From assembly GCA_028826165.1 (NCBI GenBank), contig JAPDFW010000114.1:620001-684000 (forward strand): 64,000 nt of DNA. Direction: 5' to 3'. This document shows positions 16,262-31,300 of this stretch, piece after piece (the first letter of the stretch is position 1; every line of letters starts with the position of its first letter). The notes below the pieces were generated by a model. The model was not told where the DNA came from, made no database searches, and saw nothing but the letters and a program-made list of their open reading frames with translations. Position numbers and translations under genes: made by a program. This DNA comes from Anaeramoeba ignava BMAN. Its lineage: Eukaryota; Protista; Anaeramoebae.

Positions 16262-17530
16262 TTTAATAATTTATTTAATAATTTATTTAATAATTGATTT
16301 AATAATTAATTTAATAATTGATTTAATAATTTATTTAATAATTTATTTAATAATTTATTTAATAATTTATTTAATAATTTATTTAATAATTTATTTAATA
16401 ATTTATTTAATAATTTATTTAATAATTAATTTAAAAAAAAGTGGAATAAAAAAGTGGAATTTGAGGATTTAATAATTGATTTAATAATTTATTTAATAAT
16501 TGATTTAATAATTTATTTAATAATTGATTTAATAATTTATTTAATAATTTATTTAATAATTTATTTAATAATTTATTTAATAATTGATTTAATAATTTAT
16601 TTAATAATTTATTTAAAAAGTGATTTAAAAAGGAATAAAAATTTAAGAATTTAATAATTTATTTAATAATTTATTTAATAATTTATTTAATAATTAATTT
16701 AATAATTGATTTAATAATTTATTTAATAATTTATTTAATAATTTATTTTAATAATTTATTTAATAATTTATTTAATAATTTATTTAATAATTTATTTTAA
16801 AAATTTATTTAAAAATTTATTTAATAATTTAATAATTTATTTAATAATTTATTTAATAATTTATTTAATAATTTATTTAATAATTTATTTAATAATTTAT
16901 TTAATATTTTAATAATTTATTTAATAATTTATTTTAATTTATTTAATAATTTATTTAATAATTTATTTAATAATTTATTTAATAATTTATTTAATAATTT
17001 ATTTAATAATTTATTTAATAATTTATTTAATAATTTATTTAATAATTTTAATTTATTTAATAATTTGGGTTTAATAATTTATTTAATAATTTATTTTTAA
17101 TAATTTATTTAATAATTTAAAAATTTAATAATTTATTTAATAATTTATTTAATAATTTATTTAATAATTTATTTAATAATTTATTTAATAATTTATTTAA
17201 TAATTTATTTAATAATTTATTTAATAATTTATTTAATAATTTATTTTAATTTATTTAATAATTTATTTAATAATTTATTTAATAATTTATTTAATAATTT
17301 ATTTTAATTTATTTAATAATTTATTTAATAATTTATTTAATAATTTATTTAATAATTTATTTAAAAAAAAGTGGAATAAAAAAGTGGAATTTAAGAATTT
17401 AATAATTTATTTAATAATTGATTTAATAATTTATTTAACAATTTATTTAAAAATTGATTTAATAATTGATTTAATAATTTATTTAATAATTTATTTAATA
17501 ATTTATTTAATAATTAATTTACTAATTTAT
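16262..17530. repeat. Intergenic 12-nt minisatellite (TTAATAATTTAT)n with duplicated AAAAGTGGAATAAAAAAGTGGAATTT islands
   Basis: Direct tandem repeat, with the islands at ~16435 and ~17365. Confidence 0.93.
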
Positions 17531-17667
17531 TTAAAAAAATTTTTCGAATGAAAAAAATATTTTAACAAAAAAGATTTAATTAATATTTTTTTATTTAAAA
17601 TTTGTTTTATTTTTCATTTTTTTTTATTTTTGTTTTTGTTTTTTTGTTTTTTATTATTTTTAAAAAC

Positions 17668-20216
17668 ATGGATTCAGTTAAATGTGTTGTTGTAGGAGAT
17701 GGAGGAGTTGGAAAATCTTGTTTACTAATATCATACACAACAAATGCTTTTCCATCTGAATATGTACCAACAGTATTTGATAATTATTCAGCAAATGTAA
17801 TGGTAGATGGGAAACCAATCAACTTAGGATTATGGGACACAGCAGGACAAGAAGATTACGATCGATTAAGACCATTATCATATCCACAAACAGATGTATT
17901 TTTGATCTGTTATTCAATCGAAATGCCAACATCATTAGAAAACATTAAAACTAAATGGATTCAAGAAATCCAAATTCATTGCCCTCATGTTCCCTTTTTT
18001 ATAGTTGGTAATAAACTTGATTTGAGAGGAAATCAAGACACTGAAAACAGACTCAAAGATCGAGGACTTCAAATGCTTACAACCGAACAAGGAGAAAGAT
18101 TGGCTCATGAAGTTGGCGCTGCTGGATTTATTGAATGCTCCTCTTTGACTCAACAAAATCTTAAGGCTTTAATGGATGAAGCAATTCGTGTTGCTCTTAA
18201 TCCAAATAATAAAAAGAAAAAAAGAGGAAATTTTTCCAAAAAATCTAAATCAAGATCAAAATCAAAATCTAAATCTAAATTTGTGGAAGAGAAAAAAGTC
18301 TTGACTCCTCCTGTATTGCCTAAAGGTATTCCTGCTCCTTGGATTAACATTATTACTTCCAAATATGATGAAGGTAAATAATTTAGTTTATATTTAAGTT
18401 GTTTAAATTTAAAATTCATTTCAATTTTGTTTTGTTTTATTTTAGATTTGAAGAAATTGGTAAATAACCAATTGTTTTCTGATGTTGAATTTCAAGTGGG
18501 AAAAAGAGTTTTAAATGCACATCGTGTTATTTTATCAGCTGCTTCACGTTTATTTAATCGAATATTTGAAGAATTTGATATGAGAAAAGAAAAGAAAGAG
18601 AAAGAGAAAGAGAAAGAAAAAGAAAAAGAAAAAGAAAATAATAATAATGAAAATGAAAAAGAAAAAGAGAAAGAAAAAGAGAAAGAGAAAGAAAAAGAAA
18701 AAGAAAAGATAATAATAATGATAATGAAAAAGAAGTAAATGAAAAAACAATCGAAGATGCTATTATAAATGCTCCTCATCATTTATGTTGTCCTATTAGG
18801 TACATCATAATATTCTCTTTCAAATATCTTTTTTTCCTCTTCTTAAAAAAAAAAACAATTCCATTTCGTTTTATAAAAAAAAATAGTTTATCTTTAATGA
18901 ATGATCCAGTTCTCACACCTTCTGGAAATACTTATGAAAGACAATCACTTGAAGATTATATTAAACTTAAACATGAAGATCCACTTACACGACAACATCT
19001 TCGAGTTCAAGACTTAATTCCAAATCGGTATTTATTGTTTAATATTCTTCAAATTCATTTTAATTAACACCTTATTTATATTCCAGGGGATTAAAAGATG
19101 CTATTGATGAATACAAAAAACAACATGGAATTCCTATTGAACCTATTGTTGTTCCAAAAGGTCCACAACTTCCTTTACCTGTTAGAGGAGATGATGGTAT
19201 GTGTTTTTTCACAAAATTTTTCCTTTCTTGTTCATTAAAAATTTTTTTTTTGTATTATTTTATTTTCCAATCCAAAATTAAAAAAAAATAAAATTGTAGA
19301 ACTTTTCCATTTTGATGGAATAGAATCAATCGAAGAAATTCCGAATAACAAAATCCAAATTGCTCTTGAAGATACAATTTCTGCAGATAATTTCTTAATC
19401 ATTCTTGAGTTTTTATATACAGGAATAACAACATTCAAAAAAAACTTCACATCACATCGACAACTCCAAGAACTCGCACAAACATTTGAATGCGAAGAGC
19501 TTATAACAATCAGTCGGAATCAACAAGAAGGAAACGATTTCTTAAACCCAAGCATTGGAACTTGGGTGAATGACAAAACAGCAGAAAGATTCAAAGATTT
19601 ATTTCTTCACAAGTCTCGGTTTGCAGATGTTGTTTTTAAAGTGGAAAACGAAAAAGTGTACGGACATCGTGCTTTAATTAGCTGTCGTTGCAAACCGTTA
19701 TCAAATCTGCTTTTGAAACATCAAGGAGAAAAAGCAGAAATCCCGATTGAAAAAACAACTGCAGAGCAATTTAAAGCGTTTCTGGAATACGTTTATACTG
19801 CGCATACTCCTCATCGTAAATTACCTGATTTTCTTGGTGTCATGTCACTTGGTAATAGATTCCAAATGCCGAGATTGGTGACTTTGTGTGAGCTTTATAT
19901 TTCCAAGATTGTCGAAGTCGCAACAAGAAATGATATTATTAAGGCTGACATTGATGTAATTGGAATTCTTGTCGAATCGCAAGATGCCAATGCCCAACAA
20001 CTGGAAAAATTCTGTTTGCACTTCATATCAACTAACTATGGGCCAATGTCACAAAGAGACGAATGGAAAAATTTGAAAGGAAATAATTTGGATTATATTG
20101 AAAAAAATCGTTGGCCTCCTTTAAAATATTTGAAAGAAGTTGAAGAATATGAAAAAGAATTGAAGAAACTTAATTCTTCAAATCCAAATTCAGCTGGAAA
20201 ATGTTTTGTGATGTGA
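17668..20216 (+). CDS. RHOBTB: RhoBTB/RacA-type GTPase: Rac-like domain + Pro-rich linker + split BTB1 with embedded U-box + BTB2 + C-terminal domain + CaaX; exons 17668-18373, 18446-18799, 18887-19027, 19087-19196, 19300-20216
   Basis: GTPase motifs [26 protein letters not shown]; linker PPVLP..PAP. BTB1 halves [16 protein letters not shown] and [11 protein letters not shown]; BTB2 [23 protein letters not shown]. RhoBTB tail [10 protein letters not shown], ending CFVM. All four introns are GT-AG and phase-consistent; one A is missing in the EK repeat near 18705. Confidence 0.92.
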
Positions 20217-20385
20217 AAAGAAAATCAACAAAAAAAAAACAGGAATAATATATTTTGTTTTTAAAAAAAAAAATGTTTTGTTTTCTGGCTGATCAAAAAC
20301 AAGAACTATAAAAATCAAAAAAAATTAATCAAAAAAAAATACAATCATTTCATATTTTTATTTTTTTTTTAAAAATCTAAATTAA

Positions 20386-21006
20386 ATGAACATTTCACAT
20401 AAAAGAAAAAATCAAACCAATTTCAATTCTTTAGCTTTAATGAAAAAAATGCAAAGAACAGGATCAATAAGAATTGGAATAAAAAAAAAAAACAAAAAAG
20501 ATCAAAAAAGTGGAGATTTTACAAAAAAAATTCCTGAAGAAATTTCCTATAAAATATTTAGCAATCTATCTGCAAAAAAATTAATTTTATCAAGTTCTGT
20601 AAATAAAAATTGGAAGAGAATTACAAATGATGAATTTTTATGGGCAAAAATTGTTAGTAATCAATGTCCAAGAAAAGGACATTTAAATTCTTCATGGAAA
20701 CAAGTTTTTCTTGCTTTTTCTAATGAAAAAAACTTGAAAAATATGAAAGAAGAAGTTGCTGAAACATTAAGAATAACAGATATTAATGAGAGTTTTGGAT
20801 ATTTTTCTGGAAAAGAATGTCAAACTCATAATCATCCTTGCATTTTTGCAAAAGGATCTCCAGAAACAAATAATCAAAAATTTGTCATTTCAAGTAAGAA
20901 TTTTTATGAGGAAGTTCCAATTTCAAAATGGGAAGATTCATTTAATTTGTTTTATTTTTTATTAAAGAAAAGAAATTACCATCCTCAATTTAATGATGAA
21001 AATTAG
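20386..21006 (+). CDS. F-box protein (206 aa)
   Basis: F-box motif KKIPEEISYKIFSNLSAKKLILSSSVNKNWKRITNDEFLWAK followed by SWKQVF. Confidence 0.85.
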   Translation: MNISHKRKNQTNFNSLALMKKMQRTGSIRIGIKKKNKKDQKSGDFTKKIPEEISYKIFSNLSAKKLILSSSVNKNWKRITNDEFLWAKIVSNQCPRKGHLNSSWKQVFLAFSNEKNLKNMKEEVAETLRITDINESFGYFSGKECQTHNHPCIFAKGSPETNNQKFVISSKNFYEEVPISKWEDSFNLFYFLLKKRNYHPQFNDEN

Positions 21007-21138: not shown

Positions 21139-22186
21139 ATGGAACTTTATGATGTAGTTATTCCTTATAAAAAAAATGCACGTTCGATCCAAATTCAAAT
21201 TAACCAAAAAACAGTAATTAAATTTGAAAGCAAAAATTTAAATAAAAAATAAAAATAAAAATAAAAAATAAAAAATTTAAATAAAAAAATAGTATGATCT
21301 TATCAGAAATAAAGACGAGGAAAATCTTTTTGAAATTAAATTAAAACTCCTTAAAGGTGATTACGAATATACTCTAATTATTGAAGATTGGTTTGGAAGC
21401 AAACAAGAAATAAAAGAAACAATAACAGTTCCAAGTGCAAAAAATGAAAAAAAAGGAAAAAATGTAAAAAATGCAAAAAAACCAACTAGAGAAGTTGAAA
21501 GTAAGCAAAAAAACAAAGCAAAATTGCTTTCCAAATAAATTTTATATAAAAAAATATGAATATTTATTTTGTTCCATTTCATCTCAAAAAAACATGTTAA
21601 ACAAGATAGTTTGGAAATTCCGAAAAAGAAAGTGAAGCTAAGAAAGAATTTCTGGCGCAAGCATTTAACATTACTTTTAACATTACTTGGAATTGCGATT
21701 TCTGTTTTTTTATGGAGTTTAAATACAAAAAGAATGATTGAGATGCTAACATATGCATCATCAAAAAAATTCCAAATGATTGACATCATTTTAAACTATT
21801 TTTTATTTATATTGACGGTAGTTGGATTGCATTATTCCAAGTTACCGAAAAAGATGTGGATTCCTTGCAACTCATTAGTTTTTGCTTATCAGGTTTTGTT
21901 GGATGTAATTTTCAAAACTGATGGAATTTCTGTTGTTTGGAATTGCAATTTTGGATTAGTTTTAACAGAATACGTGCGATTCCAACTGGATTCTACACGT
22001 TTAATTGTTCTTGGTTCTTCTACAATTTTGGCTGATGTGTTTTATTTTATTCGTGATATTTGGGAAAAAGATTTACTCAATTCTTTGGCTCATTTTCTTG
22101 CAATTTGTCTTGGGTTTATAGTCGGAGTTATTTATTTCCGTCTCCGTTCGACCAAAAGAAAAAGTGTATTGTCAAATCGTTATTAA
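21139..22186 (+). CDS. Membrane protein with an N-terminal Ig/CBM48-like domain and a C-terminal rhomboid-like multi-TM domain; exons 21139-21213, 21293-21500, 21606-22186
   Basis: Phase-consistent GT-AG introns. The N-terminal FEIKLKLLKGDYEYTLIIED resembles the AMPK-beta CBM48 pattern. The C-terminus has about 6 TM segments ending NSLAHFLAICLGFIVG (rhomboid TM6-like); there is no GxSG motif. Confidence 0.6.
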
Positions 22187-22324
22187 GAAGAGATTTGAGA
22201 AAAAGAAGATTTAATTTCTTTTTTTTTTTAAAAAAAAAACCAAAATTAAAATCAAAAAATCAAAAAATCATTTTTTTTTTCTTCAAATATATTTTAATTT
22301 TAATTTTAATTTTATTCATTTCGA

Positions 22325-25300
22325 ATGTCTTCTTTTCATTCGAAAGCATTAAATCATCTTGCAAAAGCATTAGCATATTCAGATCCACCATCAAAACAAC
22401 AAGTGGAATCTCTTATTTCATTATGTTCTGAGTATCAATCTGCACATTTAGACAAGAGGTGGACTAATTCTGTAATGGCATTGGCAAATTTTTTAAGGTT
22501 ATCAAAGGGAATGTATCTTCATGAGATATTACCATTAATTTTAGGCAAAGTGAAGAAGGTTTTAGATTATCAATTACAGATTTTAAGTTTAGAAAAAATG
22601 GGTAAATAAAATTTATATTAAAATTCATTTATAAAATTAAAATTTATATTAAAATTAAATTCATTTACAAAATTAAAATTAAAATTAAAATTAAAATTAA
22701 ATTCATTTATAAAATTAATATTAAAATTAAAATTAAATTCATTTATAAAATTAAATTCATTTATAAAATTAAAATTAAAATTAAAATTAAAATTAATATC
22801 AAAATTCATTTATAAAATTTAAATTAATATAAAATTAAAATTTAAATTAAAATTCATTTATAAAATTAAATTAAAATTCATTTATAAAATTAAAATTTAA
22901 ATTAAAATTAAAATTAAAATTAAAATTAAAATTCATATTAAAATTAAAATTAAAATTAAAATTAAAATTAAAATTCATATCAAATTCATTTATAAAATTA
23001 AAATTAAAATTAAATTCATTTATAAAATTTATATTCATTTATAAAATTAAAATTAAATTCATTTATAAAATTTATATCAAATTCATTTATAAAATTAATA
23101 TTAAATTTGAAATAGAAATGTTTATTGAGCGCATATTCGCCATTTTAATCGAAATTTCTCAGTTCAAAAACCCGAAACAAGATACAGAGAAAAACAAAGA
23201 AAACGAGAGCAACACAAAAACAGCAGGATCACACATCATTGATTTTATCATAAGCTCTCTTTCTTCATCATTAAAAAGAATCATACAAAAAACAGACACT
23301 TTAAAACTTTTGAAAGGAATAACAGAAAAACACGTTAAACAAGATAAAAAACAGCAAAAACAACGAGAAAAGAAGGAAAAGAAACAAGGAAAACACGAGA
23401 AAGATGAAGACGAAGATCAAGAGAAAGAGGAAGAGAAGAAAGATGATCAAGAAGAGAAGGAGAAAAACGAGGATCAAGAAAAAAAAGAGGATGAAAAAAA
23501 AGAGGATCAAGAAAAAAAGGAAGAGGATAAAGAAGATAGTGAGGAAGATGAAAAACAGGACGAAAAAGAAGACAAGGAAGATCGAGAGGAGAAAGAAAAG
23601 GACAACATAAACAGCGACAGCAAACGACACGAAGCACTAGGATTTGTGTCGGAATTTAACGCTAAGGAGATGAGTTTTGCAGCGTTTTTAGGCATTACTA
23701 ACGCCCTTGCGACACAATCCGCAATGAACATGAACCACAAGCAACTTGGGACGTTGGTTCATATCTTGTTAAAAACAATAAAGGTTCTTGAAAGACTTAA
23801 AAAAATGGTGCTGTCAAGAATCACACAGACAACAGCAAGTCCGCGCAACGCAAGAAGGAAGTCGCAGAATCTGACACACAATGTGAAATGGTCAGAAGCG
23901 GCAAAGACAGTTGCGCAATTTGTTTCGCGGGGAATAACAACGCTGCGGAGCACAGTGGTAGAGATCTGCGGAAAACTTGTGGATCTTCCCCAGGATATTT
24001 GCCGGCCAAAAGAACGTGACAGGTTCGGTGATATTGCAGAACATATTCTCGCAGCAATACTTGGCCAGGCACGAGGTCAAAAGGCTCGGACAAAACACGG
24101 CCGCGCAAGACAGCTCAGTGCGGTTCTCGAGCTTATTGCCAAAAGCACAGGAAATCAGCCCGAACAGATGATGCGTTCGGTCACTGTTTTGTCCGAAATT
24201 CTTGCAGAAAATCGCAAGTTGGTTACCGTCCTCGGAACTAAGAAGGACGATAAAAACAGCGTCAATGCGGTTCTACACACCGCCATTAAATGCCTTTCGC
24301 TTGTTGGCCAAAGAGAAGCAAGGGTTTCCCGCGTTGTTGTTGATGCTCTAAAAACGTTTCTTGTTTCCACACCAAATCCTGCTTTTGTAGAACTTGCAAG
24401 TGATGAGATATGCGCTGTGTTTCGTGACGAAAGAACAGGATGGAACGTGCAGGGAATCTCTTCCTTCATCTCTTCTTTATCAAGTGAACTTTTTGGGAAT
24501 TGGGGTCAACAATTGAGGACAGATACCCCCAAAGTTCCCGGCAACGCTCTTGTTAATATCGTTATTTTTCTCGGTAAATTGAGCTGTGAATTTGGATCTA
24601 TTGCGGAGCTTGTGGCGATGGTGATCAAACTCCTGGTGTCCAGACTGTGCAATCCAAAACATCCCGTAGATGCGGTTATTGTGAATCAATTAACCCGAAT
24701 TGCGCTTATTGAGGATGGACAAACCGCGCATCTCTCGAAAATACTGTCAGTATTCGAGACAATTATCAAGAACTCGGGAGATGACCGCACAAAAATTGCT
24801 CGCGATGAGATTCCCCAAGCACTTCTGCAGATCGCAGCACGTGTAAAGGCGCCAAGAGCAAAGAACAGGGTTTTGGTGCGTCTTGTCCAGCTTTTTATTC
24901 ATAAATGCGAGGTTATTTCCCGAGAGGCAACAAAACAGGGCATTTCCTCCTCCGCAATGGCTGCTGATCTTGGCGTTCTTCTTCCTGCAATCGCAGCCGC
25001 AGTTAGTGGGTTCAGAGAGATGAAAAAAGCTCTTGCTCTTGAACCAACTTACTCCACATCCCGTCCTGCAATTAAATACAAGAAAATGTTCCGCAGCTTC
25101 TGGTTTTATTGCGTTCTTCACGGATTCGTTGTTGATGGTCTCTGGTTTCCAGAGTGGTTCGCTGCAATAACAACCGTTGCACAGAACATCCCTGCTCTTG
25201 CAAATCGCCATAAAGCTCATGGTCAACTTGAGATTGGCGAGGAACTCCATTCTATCCTCGATTCACACTCGAGCATTGGCGCACTCAAAGAACTCCGAGC

Positions 25301-28300
25301 CTCACTTATCGGTTTTCTCCCAAAAGAAGCTGCAATCATCGCAAAACTCCAATTTGCTCAATGCACTTATCTACTCGCTGTTTACCATCTAGAAACCCTC
25401 CGTGCAGAACACGGTGCTTTTCATGAATGCTTTGCCTATCTCGAAGATGAAGGCATCCAGAACAACCAGGAGCATTTCGCATGCATTAAATCAATTATCG
25501 ATCGCGCATTCTCCCTTTTCCTAGGTTTTGTGGAGCGTCTCAATAGAGGCGAAAAACGAGATAATCTCCTTGATTACGAGGCACAATTTCTTCTTGTTAA
25601 TTTCTGTTCCAGACTCAAACGAGTCCGTCTTGCTGCGTACAAATTTATCATACAACTTGTTCAGCGTTTCCCGCACATTCTTTGGTCGAAATGCTGTCTC
25701 CGAACCCTTCTCGATCTTCTTGAAGCAACTGCATATAGTTGTGAGATTGAGCAGATTCCTGTTCTTCGTTCTCTCGATTCTGTAGATTCCTATATCAAAT
25801 CCGTTGATTACGATCCAAAAATTCCCAATTCGGGACAAACATCAACGCCACAAAACCAATCCTCGCAACTAACATCATCGCCAGATTCAAATTCAAAAAC
25901 AAAATCAAAGTCAAAATCCAAAACAAAGAAACAGAAACCAAAGTCAAAACCCAAAAACAAGAAACAAAAATCAAAGCTCAAATCGAAAAACTCTGCCAAA
26001 TCACTTGCTATCCCACAACAGCCACAATTACAGAATCAACCTCAGCTTAAACGCGGCACATCAACATCAAATTTGATGCAAATGCCACACTCGACATTAA
26101 CATCTCCACTTGGTATTTCTGCAAATGGAATCAATTCCCAAGGTGTTGCGCGACTTCTTCTTGGAATTGGGCAAAATGCATATTCCGCTCCACAAGAAGA
26201 GCAAAAATTAAGCAAGTTCAAGCTACCCCATTCTCAACACACATTGGATCTTCTTGTGGGACTTAGCGTGCGAAAGGAGATGTACAACTCACTCAAAAAA
26301 CTGTCAGCAGAATGGCTAAGAAAAGCCGTACAAATTGCACCTACTCAGATATTTTCTCTTACTCACGAATTCATCAACGATTTCATCGGTTCAAATTTTG
26401 TGATGTTGAAGCATCGTGGAGTTGGATTATTACTTGACATTATCGCTGAGACAATCAGTCCAGACGCACCTCAACCGACAAACCGATCCAAATCACAATC
26501 TAAAGTGGGGGATAGTCTCACGAGCGAATTTGTGTCTGCAGCTGAACTCAAGTCACGTTTTCTGGGTGAAATTGTAGGGATCCAACGCACTCTCGATTTT
26601 TTACACGCTACTCGGAATATCACAAATCTTTCAATCCCGCTCTCATTATCAGAACTTCTTTGCAAAGAACTCTCATCCCTTCTTTCCTCGAATCTAACCC
26701 CAAACAAACTTAACTCTGCAGATCTCGGTCCGCTCTTTATGAAGGCCGCAGCGTTTATTGTCGCTGAAAAACGTTTCGATGATGATCTTCTTCACTATAT
26801 CTGTTGGGTTCCGCCCCATCTCTTCACATCTGATGCAATGTCAGTCGGCACTTTTGTTTGGTCTTGGATCGCTGCTGAGCGTCCTGATCTAGAAATACAA
26901 ATGATGTCTGAGCTCAGCGCTGCTTGGGAACGAATAGCTAACCAACACGCAGGTATTTTCTATGTCGAATCCGATTTCGATCCAAATTCTGTACAAAGTC
27001 CTTTCTCAATGAATTGTTTCAGTGATGATGAAAATGAAGTTGAAAATTTAACAGAAAATCCTGTCAGAAATTTCCCCCAAAATGAAAATATAGAGCAAAA
27101 TTCCCCTCTTGATCAAAACACAGATTTGATGGGAGACAAAAAAGACATCAAACAAGGATCAACTCCCAACGATCTTTCATCAGCATTTCTGAAAAACGCG
27201 AAACCGCACACATTGTGGATTCAGTTTCTCATTGAGAGATTTGAGGTTGTGCGGCGAAAAAACAAGCTTCTAATGCATGTTTTCCAGCGTATTCTGCAGC
27301 GTTCTTTTGCAGACCCACTCGGATTATCAAAGCGGCAAGAATGTTTCCCAGCACGAATGCAACTTGCCTTACTTGGACTCAAATATGTCCAAGGAGATTA
27401 CATGGCATCACGTCCAGCAAAAATGCTTCTGAGAAAATGGATTTATCGAACAATTCTCGATTGGTTCAGTTTGAGACCCATTTGGCACACATTGGAAACA
27501 AAATCTTCAATGCAGAAAACGCTTGGGATCCTAACCGAACTTGCACAAACATTCCAACAAGAATCACTTGTTGTCAACTCATTCAAAAAGGATTATCTTG
27601 CGCAATCGCCGATCAAAGAGCGTCGAGACAACGATGCAAACATAAACACACCGCTTATTGGAGGAACCTCATTTGATGCTGATAATCTCCTCGGCTTCGA
27701 AAATATGGGTGTTGATCCACAAACAACGCAATCAAACCCGCAGAACTATTTCACGGTTACAAGCTCATCTCTCTCTGTTGTCATGTCAGTGACAAAAACA
27801 ATGTCCATGAACAAACGTTTCCAGGACAACGCAATGCTTGATGAGACAAGTCTCCGCAACATCCAGCGCCAGATCTCCGAAATGCGCGGCGTTCTCAAAC
27901 TCATCAAACTCATCCTCTTCTTTTTGGGTGATGAGATTGAGCGAATCTCAGTATGGTTCAATCCTCGACAAGATCCCGAACTGCAATTTCCTGATGAAAA
28001 AAAATATGTTCCTGATTACGTAGCATTGTCTACACGCGGTGGCTCAGAATTGAAGAAAATGGTCACAAGTGCGTGGCAAATCAATCCTGCGTTGGCAGTT
28101 AGTCTTTCATCGCGTCTGAATATTCCTCTCATACATGACACTCTTCGAAGAATGGTTCGTGAGCATCCACTCGCAGTTTGCCATCTACATGACGCCTTTC
28201 AATTTCTTGTTGACGAACGTTCCGTTACAGAAGACATCCCCGAACTCCACAATCTTGTTTTTTTCCCGCCAGTATCCCCTGCTCTTGCTCTTTCCCTTCT

Positions 28301-31300
28301 CGTAAAACCCTTCTCTTCTCACAGTCTCGTTGCTCAATACGCCACTCATGTTCTCGCAAGTTTTGAGCCTCAAATGATAATTTTTTTCCTCCCACAAATT
28401 GTCCAATCTCTTCGTTACGACCGTTCAGGATTTGTCTTCAAATTTCTTCTCGAAGCAGCTTCAAAATCGTTTCTTGTCGCTCACCAACTCATCTGGAATT
28501 GCCAAGCAGAAAGCCAATCAACAACAGTGCGTCCCAATGATGTTCTCAAGCCTCTTGCCTTGCGTCTCATCTCAGAAATCACCTCTTCCTTTACTCTTCA
28601 ACAGGCATATCTTTATCAGAGCGAATTTTCCTTCATTAACAGATTCACACACATTTCAGGCATTCTCAAACCTTTCAAAACAAAACAGGAACGAAAAGCC
28701 AAAATTCGCGAGCAACTCAAATTAATTCAAATAGTCCCCAATCTCTATCTCCCCACAAATCCCGAATCCCGCGTAGTCAGAATTCATTGTGATAGCGGCA
28801 TTCCTCTTCCCAGTCACGCAAAGGTTCCTATTATGGTTACTTTCCGTGTTCAGTACATTTCTATTGCCGAACAGATGCGTGAAATTGCTTCTTTTGAACC
28901 GCCTAAAGATTTTCGTTTCTCTCAAAACTCATTACTTGTTGATATTCCCGATGATCCGAATCAAGAAAAGCCCAATCACATCAAAAACAATTCAAATATT
29001 TCTTCTGAACATGACCGTTCACACGAGAAGAGTCTTGATGCTGATAAAAGTCATCATTCCGAAACTCAAAATCTGTCCAATATTTCTGATATTACTGATA
29101 ATTCCAATTTGGATAATTATGCTCATCATCGTTCTCAATCTTTGGTTGTTGATAAGAATTTTATCAAGGATAACCCTGATTTGGATTTCAAAAATATTGA
29201 TGAAGATCCACTTGAAATGAAGAGAGACAGTAATTTATCTATTGATCAAGAGAAGCAAGTTGGTAATAATTTTGCTAATATGCAATCTCAGACCAAGAGG
29301 AGAGAATTTGATCAAAAATGTATTTTCAAGTCTGGAGATGATATTCGTCAAGTAATTTGGAAAAATATTTATATAAACTTTTATTTCCAAACATGAAAAC
29401 ATTTATTTAAAAATTTATTTACAAACATGAAAATATTTAAAAATTTATTTATTTACAAATTTATTTACAAATTTATTTACAAATTTATTTACAAATTTAT
29501 TTACAAATTTATTTATAAATTTATTTATAAATTTATTTAAAATTTATTTAAAAATTTATTTAAAATTTATTTACAAATTTATTTATAAAATTTATTTCAA
29601 AATTTATTTATAAATTTATTTACAAATTTATTTACAAATTTATTTACAAATTTATTTACAAATTTATTTACAAATTTATTTACAAATTTATTTACAAATT
29701 TATTTACAAATTTATTTACAAATTTATTTACAAATTTATTTTAAAAATTTATTTATAAATTTATTTACAAATTTATTTTTACAAATTTATTTACAAATTT
29801 ATTTACAAATTTATTTACAAATTTATTTACAAATTTATTTACAAATTTATTTACAAATTTTTTACAAATTTATTTTACAAATTTATTTATAAATTTATTT
29901 ATAAATTTATTTACAAATTTATTTATAAATTTATTTTACAAATTTTATTTTAAAATTTATTTACAAATTTATTTAAAAATTTATTTAAAATTTATTTACA
30001 AATTTATTTACAAATTTATTTAAAATTTATTTACAAATTTATTTACAAATTTATTTATAAATTTATTTACAAATTTATTTACAAATTTACTTATAAATTT
30101 ATTTACAAATTTATTTATAAATTTATTTATAAATTTATTTATAAATTTATTTAAAATTTATTTTTTAAATTTATTTTTAAAATTTATTTACAAATTTATT
30201 TTAAAATTTATTTACAAAATTTATTTATAAATTTATAAATTTATTTACAAATTTATTTATAAAATTTATTTATAAATTTATTTTAAAAATTTATTTTACA
30301 AATTTATTTACAAATTTATTTTACAAATTTATTTAAAATTTATTTATAAATTTATTTAAAAATTTATTTACAAATTTATTTACAAATTTATTTATAAATT
30401 TATTTACAAAATTTATTTTATAAATTTATTTACAAATTTATTTATAAATTTATTTACAAATTTATTTAAAATTTATTTAAAAATTTATTTACAAATTATT
30501 TTAAAATTTATTTATAAATTTATTTTACAAATTTATTTACAAAATTTATTTATAAAATTTATTTACAAATTTATTTACAAATTTATTTACAAATTTATTT
30601 ATAAATTTATTTACAAATTTATTTACAAATTTATTTAAAATTTATTTAAAAATTTATTTACAAATTTATTTACAAATTTATTTACAAATTTATTTACAAA
30701 TTTATTTAAAAATTTATTTATAAATTTATTTAAAAATTTATTTACAAATTTATTTAAAAATTTATTTACAAATTTATTTACAAATTTATTTATAAAAATT
30801 TAATAGGATATGCTTGCTCTGCAAATCATCTCTTTCGTACAAAAAATTCTCAAATCAGTAAACTTAAAATTATTCTTATATCCATATAAAGTAATAGCAA
30901 CTGGAGATGGATGTGGAATCATAGAATGTGTTAAAAACTCAAAATCAAGAGATCAATTAGGAAAAGAAACAGAAGGAAGTTTATTCGAACATTTCAAAAA
31001 CAAATACGGACATGAAGATTCACCAAGTTTTAGACAAGCAAGAAACAATTTTATCGAGAGCATGGCAGCTTATTCAGTAGCAAGTTTCCTTCTCCAAATC
31101 AAAGATCGACACAACGGAAATATTATGGTTGACAATCAAGGACATGTAATTCACATTGATTTCGGTTTCATTTTCGATATATCACCAGGAGGTGACATGA
31201 AATTTGAAAGAGCTCCTTTTAAACTTTCTCACGAAATGATCCAAATAATGGGCGGTTCAATTGATGCAGAACCTTTTAAACAATTTATGGATTACTGTTG

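Follow-up and report, generated by a model that had tools for sequence, protein, structure and literature searches.

The stretch of DNA analyzed here (the window) comprises 64,000 nucleotides from Anaeramoeba ignava BMAN (contig JAPDFW010000114.1, positions 620,001 to 684,000 of the forward strand; ~20% G+C). On its plus strand, at 17668 to 20216, it carries a five-exon gene for a protein of the RhoBTB/RacA family in which a complete CHIP-like U-box occupies the loop splitting the first BTB domain (BTB1). This protein is probably a ubiquitin ligase (E3) in its own right, recruiting a ubiquitin-conjugating enzyme (E2) directly. Exon-by-exon translation and searches gave the domain order as a Rac-like GTPase, a Pro-rich linker, the N-terminal half of BTB1, a charged linker rich in Glu, Lys, and Asn, the U-box, the C-terminal half of BTB1, a second BTB domain (BTB2), a C-terminal region, and a CaaX box.

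Gene structure and expression

All four introns have GT and AG at their ends, and each is absent from contigs of a public run (X1), with borders that are exact to the base. The features of the gene are as follows.

17668..18373, plus strand: exon 1; Rac-like GTPase domain (residues 1 to ~180), basic and Ser-rich stretch, conserved Pro-rich linker
18374..18445, plus strand: intron 1; GT..AG, 72 nt; contig joint 18371>18444, cut +2
18446..18799, plus strand: exon 2; N-terminal half of BTB1 (18448 to ~18590), low-complexity linker of Glu, Lys, and Asn (~18590 to 18735), first U-box residues (18771 to 18799)
18548..18732, plus strand: "intron" of NCBI model M0811_02593, 185 nt; joins ...ILSAAS to QVNEK..., bridging the frame change
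18660..18738, plus strand: frame-shift stretch; stop of the BTB frame at 18736-18738, U-box frame open from ~18660; a one-base shift is needed
18800..18886, plus strand: intron 2; GT..AG, 87 nt; contig joint 18796>18884, cut +3
18887..19027, plus strand: exon 3; U-box core, matched by Pfam PF04564 on this exon alone
19028..19086, plus strand: intron 3; GT..AG, 59 nt; contig joint 19026>19086, cut +1
19087..19196, plus strand: exon 4; final U-box helix (GLKDAIDEY...), then a Pro-rich flexible linker
19197..19299, plus strand: intron 4; GT..AG, 103 nt; contig joint 19195>19299, cut +1
19300..20216, plus strand: exon 5; C-terminal half of BTB1, BTB2, conserved C-terminal (BACK-like) region, CaaX box CFVM, stop codon

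Of the words sampled from the gene, 70% are present in run X1; in the contig mapping, the stretch from 18571 to 18741 was masked as a repeat. Because the four genomic introns are missing from the X1 contigs, these contigs derive from spliced RNA, and the gene is expressed in A. ignava. A single contig of 1288 nt links 18742-18796, 18884-19026, 19086-19195, and 19299-20239; it thus joins the end of exon 2 to exons 3, 4, and 5, so that the U-box exons are retained in the mature transcript. The spliced contigs over these exons have a depth of ~47 to 52 and continue into BTB2 and the stop codon, and the U-box exons are in phase with BTB2 and the CaaX box. The four introns proposed in the first-pass annotation are therefore confirmed to the base, and a check for transcripts that lose the U-box exons found exons 3 and 4 retained in the X1 contigs, through to the stop codon.

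The sequence of the gene was known beforehand. A search seeded with one full-length relative recovered an NCBI entry of 680 residues, "hypothetical protein M0811_02593 [Anaeramoeba ignava]" (referred to here as P0160), with which each exon piece agrees at 100% identity; the window is therefore from A. ignava, and the gene was already annotated. The precomputed Pfam matches of P0160 already list the U-box. No transcript-derived A. ignava version of the protein was found in two protein database searches, and a look-up of contigs that encode P0160 gave none.

U-box domain

Exon 3 alone matches the Pfam U-box profile PF04564 over positions 12 to 57 of 73 (E = 9.7e-13; 48.5 bits, with a cutoff of 21.4), and both ends of the domain are encoded by exons 2 and 4. 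In P0160, the match covers residues 283 to 352 and profile positions 1 to 71 of 73 (E = 3.4e-21; 75.6 bits, same cutoff), between the N-terminal half of BTB1, encoded by exon 2, and the C-terminal half, encoded by the start of exon 5. The full CHIP-like U-box that had been read into the bipartite BTB1 of a RhoBTB/RacA-type protein is thus borne out, and profile searches of the single exons and of P0160 matched all three of the expected families (U-box, BTB, and Ras).

Among solved structures, those nearest to exon 3 by sequence are the U-boxes of LubX and CHIP (E values of 7e-9 to 3e-8). As in CHIP/STUB1, whose chains are matched with an E value of ~4e-15, the U-box is complete and lacks the zinc-binding Cys/His set of the RING; of the RING zinc ligands, it retains just the CC of the LCCPI motif, whereas the RING-bearing relatives described below have C..C / C.H / C..C / C..C at those columns. 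Alignment with CHIP reveals that the Ile residue of the CPI motif, hydrophobic character at +2 (Leu in place of Phe), the His residue before DP, and the LIPN motif are all retained. Going by work on CHIP, these residues would belong to the E2-facing surface, and the core residues of that surface are conserved across the family alignment. The U-box of CHIP, in contrast, is C-terminal, follows tetratricopeptide repeats (TPR) and a coiled coil, and is aimed by chaperones, whereas the one described here is nested in the BTB domain of a predicted prenylated small GTPase.

GTPase, linker, BTB, and C-terminal regions

The GTPase domain encoded by exon 1 matches the Pfam Ras profile with an E value of 5.1e-50 (2.6e-49 for P0160), and its modeled form is 64 to 67% identical to human Rac1 and Rac3 in Foldseek comparisons, with a template modeling (TM) score of 0.93. 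The P-loop, like the DTAGQE and NKLD motifs, is canonical, and the Rho insert is visible after NKLD; this canonical, Rac-like domain differs from the deviant GTPase domains of RhoBTB1 and RhoBTB2. Another A. ignava protein, P0188 (M0811_03444, 888 residues), has a Rho domain that is 50% identical to this one and is fused instead to PF24296 and PF09949, which points to a variety of Rho-domain fusions in this genome.

In an alignment of 61 family sequences, the residues P215, P218, and P224 of the Pro-rich linker between the GTPase domain and BTB1 are invariant. The N-terminal half of BTB1 in exon 2 matches the Pfam BTB profile over positions 2 to 51 (E = 1.3e-9), and exon 5 matches it in two stretches (E = 2.1e-22; 4.5e-28 for P0160). 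A search of exon 5 against 1.84 billion representatives returned 1250 matches, the top ones with ~50% identity; the best 150 are all BTB-BTB proteins, and 63 of these 150 have a Rho domain. The C-terminal region gives a weak Pfam BACK match (E = 0.012; 16.1 bits, under the cutoff of 20.9) and is strongly conserved in the family, with W647, P648, P649, and Y652 nearly invariant in the same alignment. The CaaX box that had been claimed for the C terminus is present in exon 5 as CFVM, directly before the stop codon, and the family consensus is CxxM.

Predicted structure

A full-length AlphaFold model of P0160, built with the 61-sequence family alignment, has a mean predicted local distance difference test score (pLDDT) of 87.7. 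The U-box scores ~88 to 98, and the values are also high for the GTPase domain, both halves of BTB1, and BTB2; they are low for the linkers, falling below 50 at residues 359 to 372, after the U-box. A separate model of the BTB1[U-box] fragment (residues 226 to 474; pLDDT, 89) was compared with 48,161 solved chains. The BTB domain of SLX4 aligns with it over 113 of 119 residues with a Z score of 14.4 and a root mean square deviation (rmsd) of 2.3, and the aligned range, 1 to 231 of the model, includes both halves of BTB1. The BTB/3-box of SPOP aligns with a Z score of 12.3, and KLHL11 in its Cul3 complex does so with a Z score of 11.7, again over the range of 1 to 231. Since solved BTB domains align across both halves, BTB1 is predicted to fold around the U-box. 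Residues 57 to 128 of the fragment model superpose on the UbcH5b-bound U-box of CHIP with a Z score of 12.7 and an rmsd of 0.7 Å over 72 of 73 residues (42% identity). The question of whether BTB1 folds around its insert, which the first-pass annotation had left to modeling, thus receives a positive answer at the level of prediction: in the model, the two halves form one BTB fold, and the U-box is a self-contained excursion from it.

Related proteins with ubiquitin-transfer modules in BTB1

The A. ignava protein shares with the described RhoBTB proteins (human RhoBTB1 to RhoBTB3 and Dictyostelium RacA) the N-terminal Rho-type GTPase domain, the Pro-rich linker, the tandem BTB domains of which the first is bipartite, and a conserved C-terminal region, which may be of the BACK/3-box kind; it is 40 to 58% identical to RacA-like proteins, and it has a CaaX box in common with RhoBTB3, the only human RhoBTB protein that carries one (PMC4931677). 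It differs from the described members in having a complete U-box where the BTB1 insert of those proteins is considered to be "of unknown function" (PMC4931677). The insert of RhoBTB1/2-type proteins is longer and shows no detectable similarity to the U-box: hmmsearch with the family U-box profile and with filters off detected no U-box remnant in it, only scattered hits with E values of 0.4 to 0.8. In the RacA-like proteins of dictyostelids and animals, the insert is just 31 to 48 residues long.

At least 25 database proteins, drawn from at least 11 named amoebozoan species (in Tubulinea, Discosea, and Archamoebae) and from environmental samples or metagenomes, have the Ras-BTB[U-box]-BTB layout. 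When the family U-box profile was run on 282 collected relatives, 38 proved to have a module at the BTB1 split, a U-box in 29 and a RING or RING-like domain in 9. The U-box form is represented in Tubulinea by Rhizamoeba saxonica, Flabellula baltica, Arcella intermedia (A0A6B2KZ06, automatically named "RING-type E3 ubiquitin transferase"), Amoeba proteus, and Copromyxa protea; in Discosea by Pellita catalonica and Luapelamoeba hula; in Archamoebae by Mastigamoeba balamuthi (m51a1_g9329), Mastigella eilhardi, and Pelomyxa schiedti ("rac gtpase"); and, in addition, by many metagenome and Logan proteins. These named relatives have the same order of Ras, N-terminal half of BTB1, U-box, C-terminal half of BTB1, and BTB2, and they are 38 to 46% identical to the A. 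ignava protein over 92 to 100% of its length. Among the collected relatives, A. ignava is the sole named non-amoebozoan with the U-box form.

Other relatives have different modules at the same site. A C3HC4 RING finger occupies the U-box columns in proteins from Lithocolla globosa (P0039), Stenamoeba stenopodia (P0167), and Vannella robusta (P0265) and in several environmental proteins; besides the three named, it is seen in P0033, P0277, P0028, P0047, and P0269. Several RING-form proteins have a second Cys-rich stretch (KLKVxCxxC) after the RING. Two entries, P0269 and P0001, have the rotifer Didymodactylos carnosus as their recorded source, and a contaminant origin is possible. Three Logan proteins of ~1175 to 1189 residues, P0257, P0270, and P0274, have, within the BTB1 split, a VWA domain together with an E2 domain of the UBC type that has its Cys residue; in P0257, the N-terminal half of BTB1 is at residues 199 to 255, VWA at 397 to 512, UQ_con at 643 to 754, and the C-terminal half of BTB1 at 894 to 971, and the CaaX box is CAVM. 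P0270 has a SAM domain besides VWA and E2. Because three different ubiquitin-transfer modules (U-box, RING, and VWA plus E2) share one site, direct engagement of the E2 would appear to be the function under selection.

The first-pass annotation had offered the architecture as undescribed and proposed a search for it across eukaryotes. Its uniqueness does not hold, as the gene is in NCBI and many amoebae share the layout, which is, however, absent from the characterized members of the family (Dictyostelium RacA and the animal proteins). Full-text literature searches, with subscription-only papers outside their coverage, found no published description of a RhoBTB protein with a U-box, RING, or E2 domain, and a 2021 survey of amoebozoan Rho GTPases records RacA with two BTB domains and leaves the U-box unmentioned (PMC8305917). 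The architecture is thus present in databases for many amoebae yet appears to be undescribed in print, and none of the relatives named above is characterized.

In a quick tree (71 rows and 579 columns, with the insert columns excluded), whose backbone is weak, A. ignava falls among the RacA-like rows, beside U-box proteins of Discosea and Tubulinea, with low support; it is the only metamonad among the RhoBTB relatives, and its gene may have been inherited or transferred from Amoebozoa. A single origin of the BTB1 insert was considered and not adopted: gains or losses of the module number at least 10 on this tree, and the distribution of U-box versus RING takes 4 changes. A tentative scenario, which we consider possible and not the likeliest, is that the BTB1 split of RhoBTB proteins has been, since early on, a conserved docking site for modules that engage an E2. 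The ancestral RhoBTB protein would then have been a self-contained, prenylated, GTPase-controlled E3 of the RING type; the RING could have been exchanged for a U-box in several amoeboid lineages and for VWA plus E2 in one, and the module could have been lost in dictyostelids and animals, with Cul3-Rbx1 supplying the RING in trans.

Proposed mechanism

The protein would be farnesylated at CFVM and located at the membrane, and its BTB domains would provide dimerization and partner binding. Its own U-box would recruit an E2~ubiquitin conjugate of the Ubc4/5 type, which would make the polypeptide itself an E3, and the Rac-like switch might control access through an intramolecular contact between the GTPase domain and BTB1, as proposed for human RhoBTB proteins in the autoinhibition model of Ji and Rivero (2016; PMC4931677). 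The adaptors of Cullin-3-RING ligases (CRL3), such as SPOP, KLHL proteins, and KEAP1, resemble the A. ignava protein in the reconstituted BTB1 fold (Z scores of 11 to 12) and in the tandem BTB domains with a possibly BACK-like tail. They differ in that their E2-binding RING comes in trans from Rbx1 via Cul3, whereas the A. ignava protein has a predicted E2-binding domain in cis.

Several points weigh against this mechanism; they concern the reading frame, the U-box, the model, and the cullins. In the assembly, the N-terminal half of BTB1 and the U-box lie in different frames. The frame change that the first-pass annotation had placed near 18705 is indeed present: the BTB frame continues to its stop at 18736-18738, the U-box frame becomes open only at ~18660, and both look coding at the shift (the BTB frame reads ENNNNENEK and the U-box frame DNNNDNEKE). 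Given the two frames and the masking of 18571-18741 in the transcript mapping, the continuous polypeptide is one that we infer. No A. ignava paralog with more than 31% identity over the BTB2 part was found, hence no second allele or gene copy against which the repeat could be compared.

The likeliest cause of the frame change is a single-base error or variant within the low-complexity A/G run at 18660-18735 of the assembly. If it were genuine, the gene would be broken, recently decayed, or dependent on ribosomal frameshifting on the A-rich run, and normal translation would yield the GTPase domain, half of a BTB domain, and a tail of Glu and Lys, leaving the U-box unmade. Such an outcome would agree with the stop of the BTB frame in the assembly, with the need of the NCBI model for an invented intron to bypass the shift, and with the masked repeat that hides reads at this very place. 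We nevertheless regard it as very unlikely: three downstream exons follow with correct splice phases and ~400 stop-free codons, identity to relatives is 40 to 50% across the whole length, transcript depth is equal on either side of the shift, the shift sits in a run of A and G only, where consensus errors are common, and homologs have a continuous charged linker at this position.

The intron at 18548-18732 in the NCBI model is probably an artefact, and the public model probably needs correcting. That intron was rejected on three counts: it deletes, along with the Glu/Lys linker, RLFNRIF, part of a helix that each of the 60 aligned relatives retains (consensus, SAS..FRRLF); an RNA contig runs unbroken from 18444 to 18570, past the putative donor, and for 59 nt more; and in relatives with a U-box, an unbroken charged linker of 28 to 150 residues occupies this place. 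Other introns that might mend the frame were also discarded. Within 18548-18740, GT occurs solely at 18548 and 18735, and an intron starting at the latter would be no longer than 22 nt and would leave the frame wrong; a dinucleotide scan of this interval found no alternative GT..AG pair that restores the frame. As a lesson for annotation, the public model sacrifices part of a conserved BTB helix in order to avoid a frame change.

With the protein read as continuous, there is the question of whether its U-box is active. Intrinsic E3 activity is, for any member, a prediction, and the Pro residue that stands in CHIP ahead of the last conserved Leu residue is His in this U-box. That substitution, together with the existence of U-boxes and RINGs that are inactive dimer partners, would suit a U-box that is non-catalytic, for example a dimerization or docking surface, in a protein that works only as a GTPase or an adaptor. 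We consider this unlikely in view of the full-length profile match well over the cutoff, the predicted fold within 0.7 Å of an E2-bound CHIP U-box, the conservation of the core E2-facing residues across the family alignment, and the replacement of the U-box by RING and E2 modules in relatives. The structural support consists of pLDDT values and superpositions of individual domains.

A more serious alternative is that the U-box adds to a Cul3 ligase and does not replace it. BTB1 would then still be a Cul3 substrate adaptor, and the U-box would be a second E2-recruiting site, serving chain extension (an E4-like role), another chain type, or self-ubiquitylation and turnover, so that the protein would not be cullin independent. 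The A. ignava genome has at least eight cullin loci, and the reconstituted BTB1 superposes on the Cul3-binding BTB domains of KLHL11, KEAP1, and the BTB/3-box of SPOP, solved with Cul3, with Z scores of 11 to 12; in view of these two facts, the analysis lends no support to cullin independence, which the first-pass annotation had put forward as possible. The weak BACK/3-box-like match in the C-terminal region points in the same direction, as does the binding of Cul3 by BTB1 of human RhoBTB proteins (PMC4931677). On the other side, Cul3 binding by the A. ignava protein would follow by analogy with these human proteins, in which BTB1 binds both Cul3 and the GTPase domain (PMC4931677); the U-box sits within that domain and could hinder the surface, and relatives in which this position holds a complete E2 point to the RING of Rbx1 as dispensable. 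A dual ligase of this kind is a real possibility, if clearly a less probable one than an E3 that works through its own U-box.

Neighboring sequence

The next downstream open reading frame (ORF), at 20386-21006 on the plus strand, codes for an F-box protein of 206 residues (Pfam F-box-like; E = 2e-10), so that a second ubiquitin ligase component lies adjacent, 170 bp past the stop codon of the RhoBTB gene. At 23118-29396, also on the plus strand, lies an uninterrupted ORF of 2092 residues for a PI4-kinase (PI4K_N, E = 1e-69; PI3Ka, E = 1.4e-21). The stretch from 24001 to 28000 has 43% G+C, versus ~20% in its surroundings, and no Rfam match was found in 22000-30000. Upstream of the gene, 16454-16654 and 17384-17551 are tandem arrays of an AT-only unit of ~12 nt (TAATAATTTATT-like), which appear in the ORF list as IIYLIIDLII... 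and are probably minisatellites.

Implications for the RhoBTB family

Human RhoBTB proteins are tumor suppressors and disease genes that are thought to act only as Cullin-3 substrate adaptors. The presence of a U-box, RING, or E2 domain at the BTB1 split across many amoebae would tie the RhoBTB family to direct ubiquitin transfer early in its history. With a canonical switch of the Rac type, a putative membrane anchor, and a predicted E2-recruiting domain all in one polypeptide, the protein offers a simple experimental handle, and it could reveal the way in which a small GTPase controls a ubiquitin ligase and whether a cullin is needed for BTB scaffolds to work. If modules that engage an E2 did dock at the BTB1 split from early on, the "insertion of unknown function" of animal RhoBTB proteins would be the scar of a lost ligase domain.

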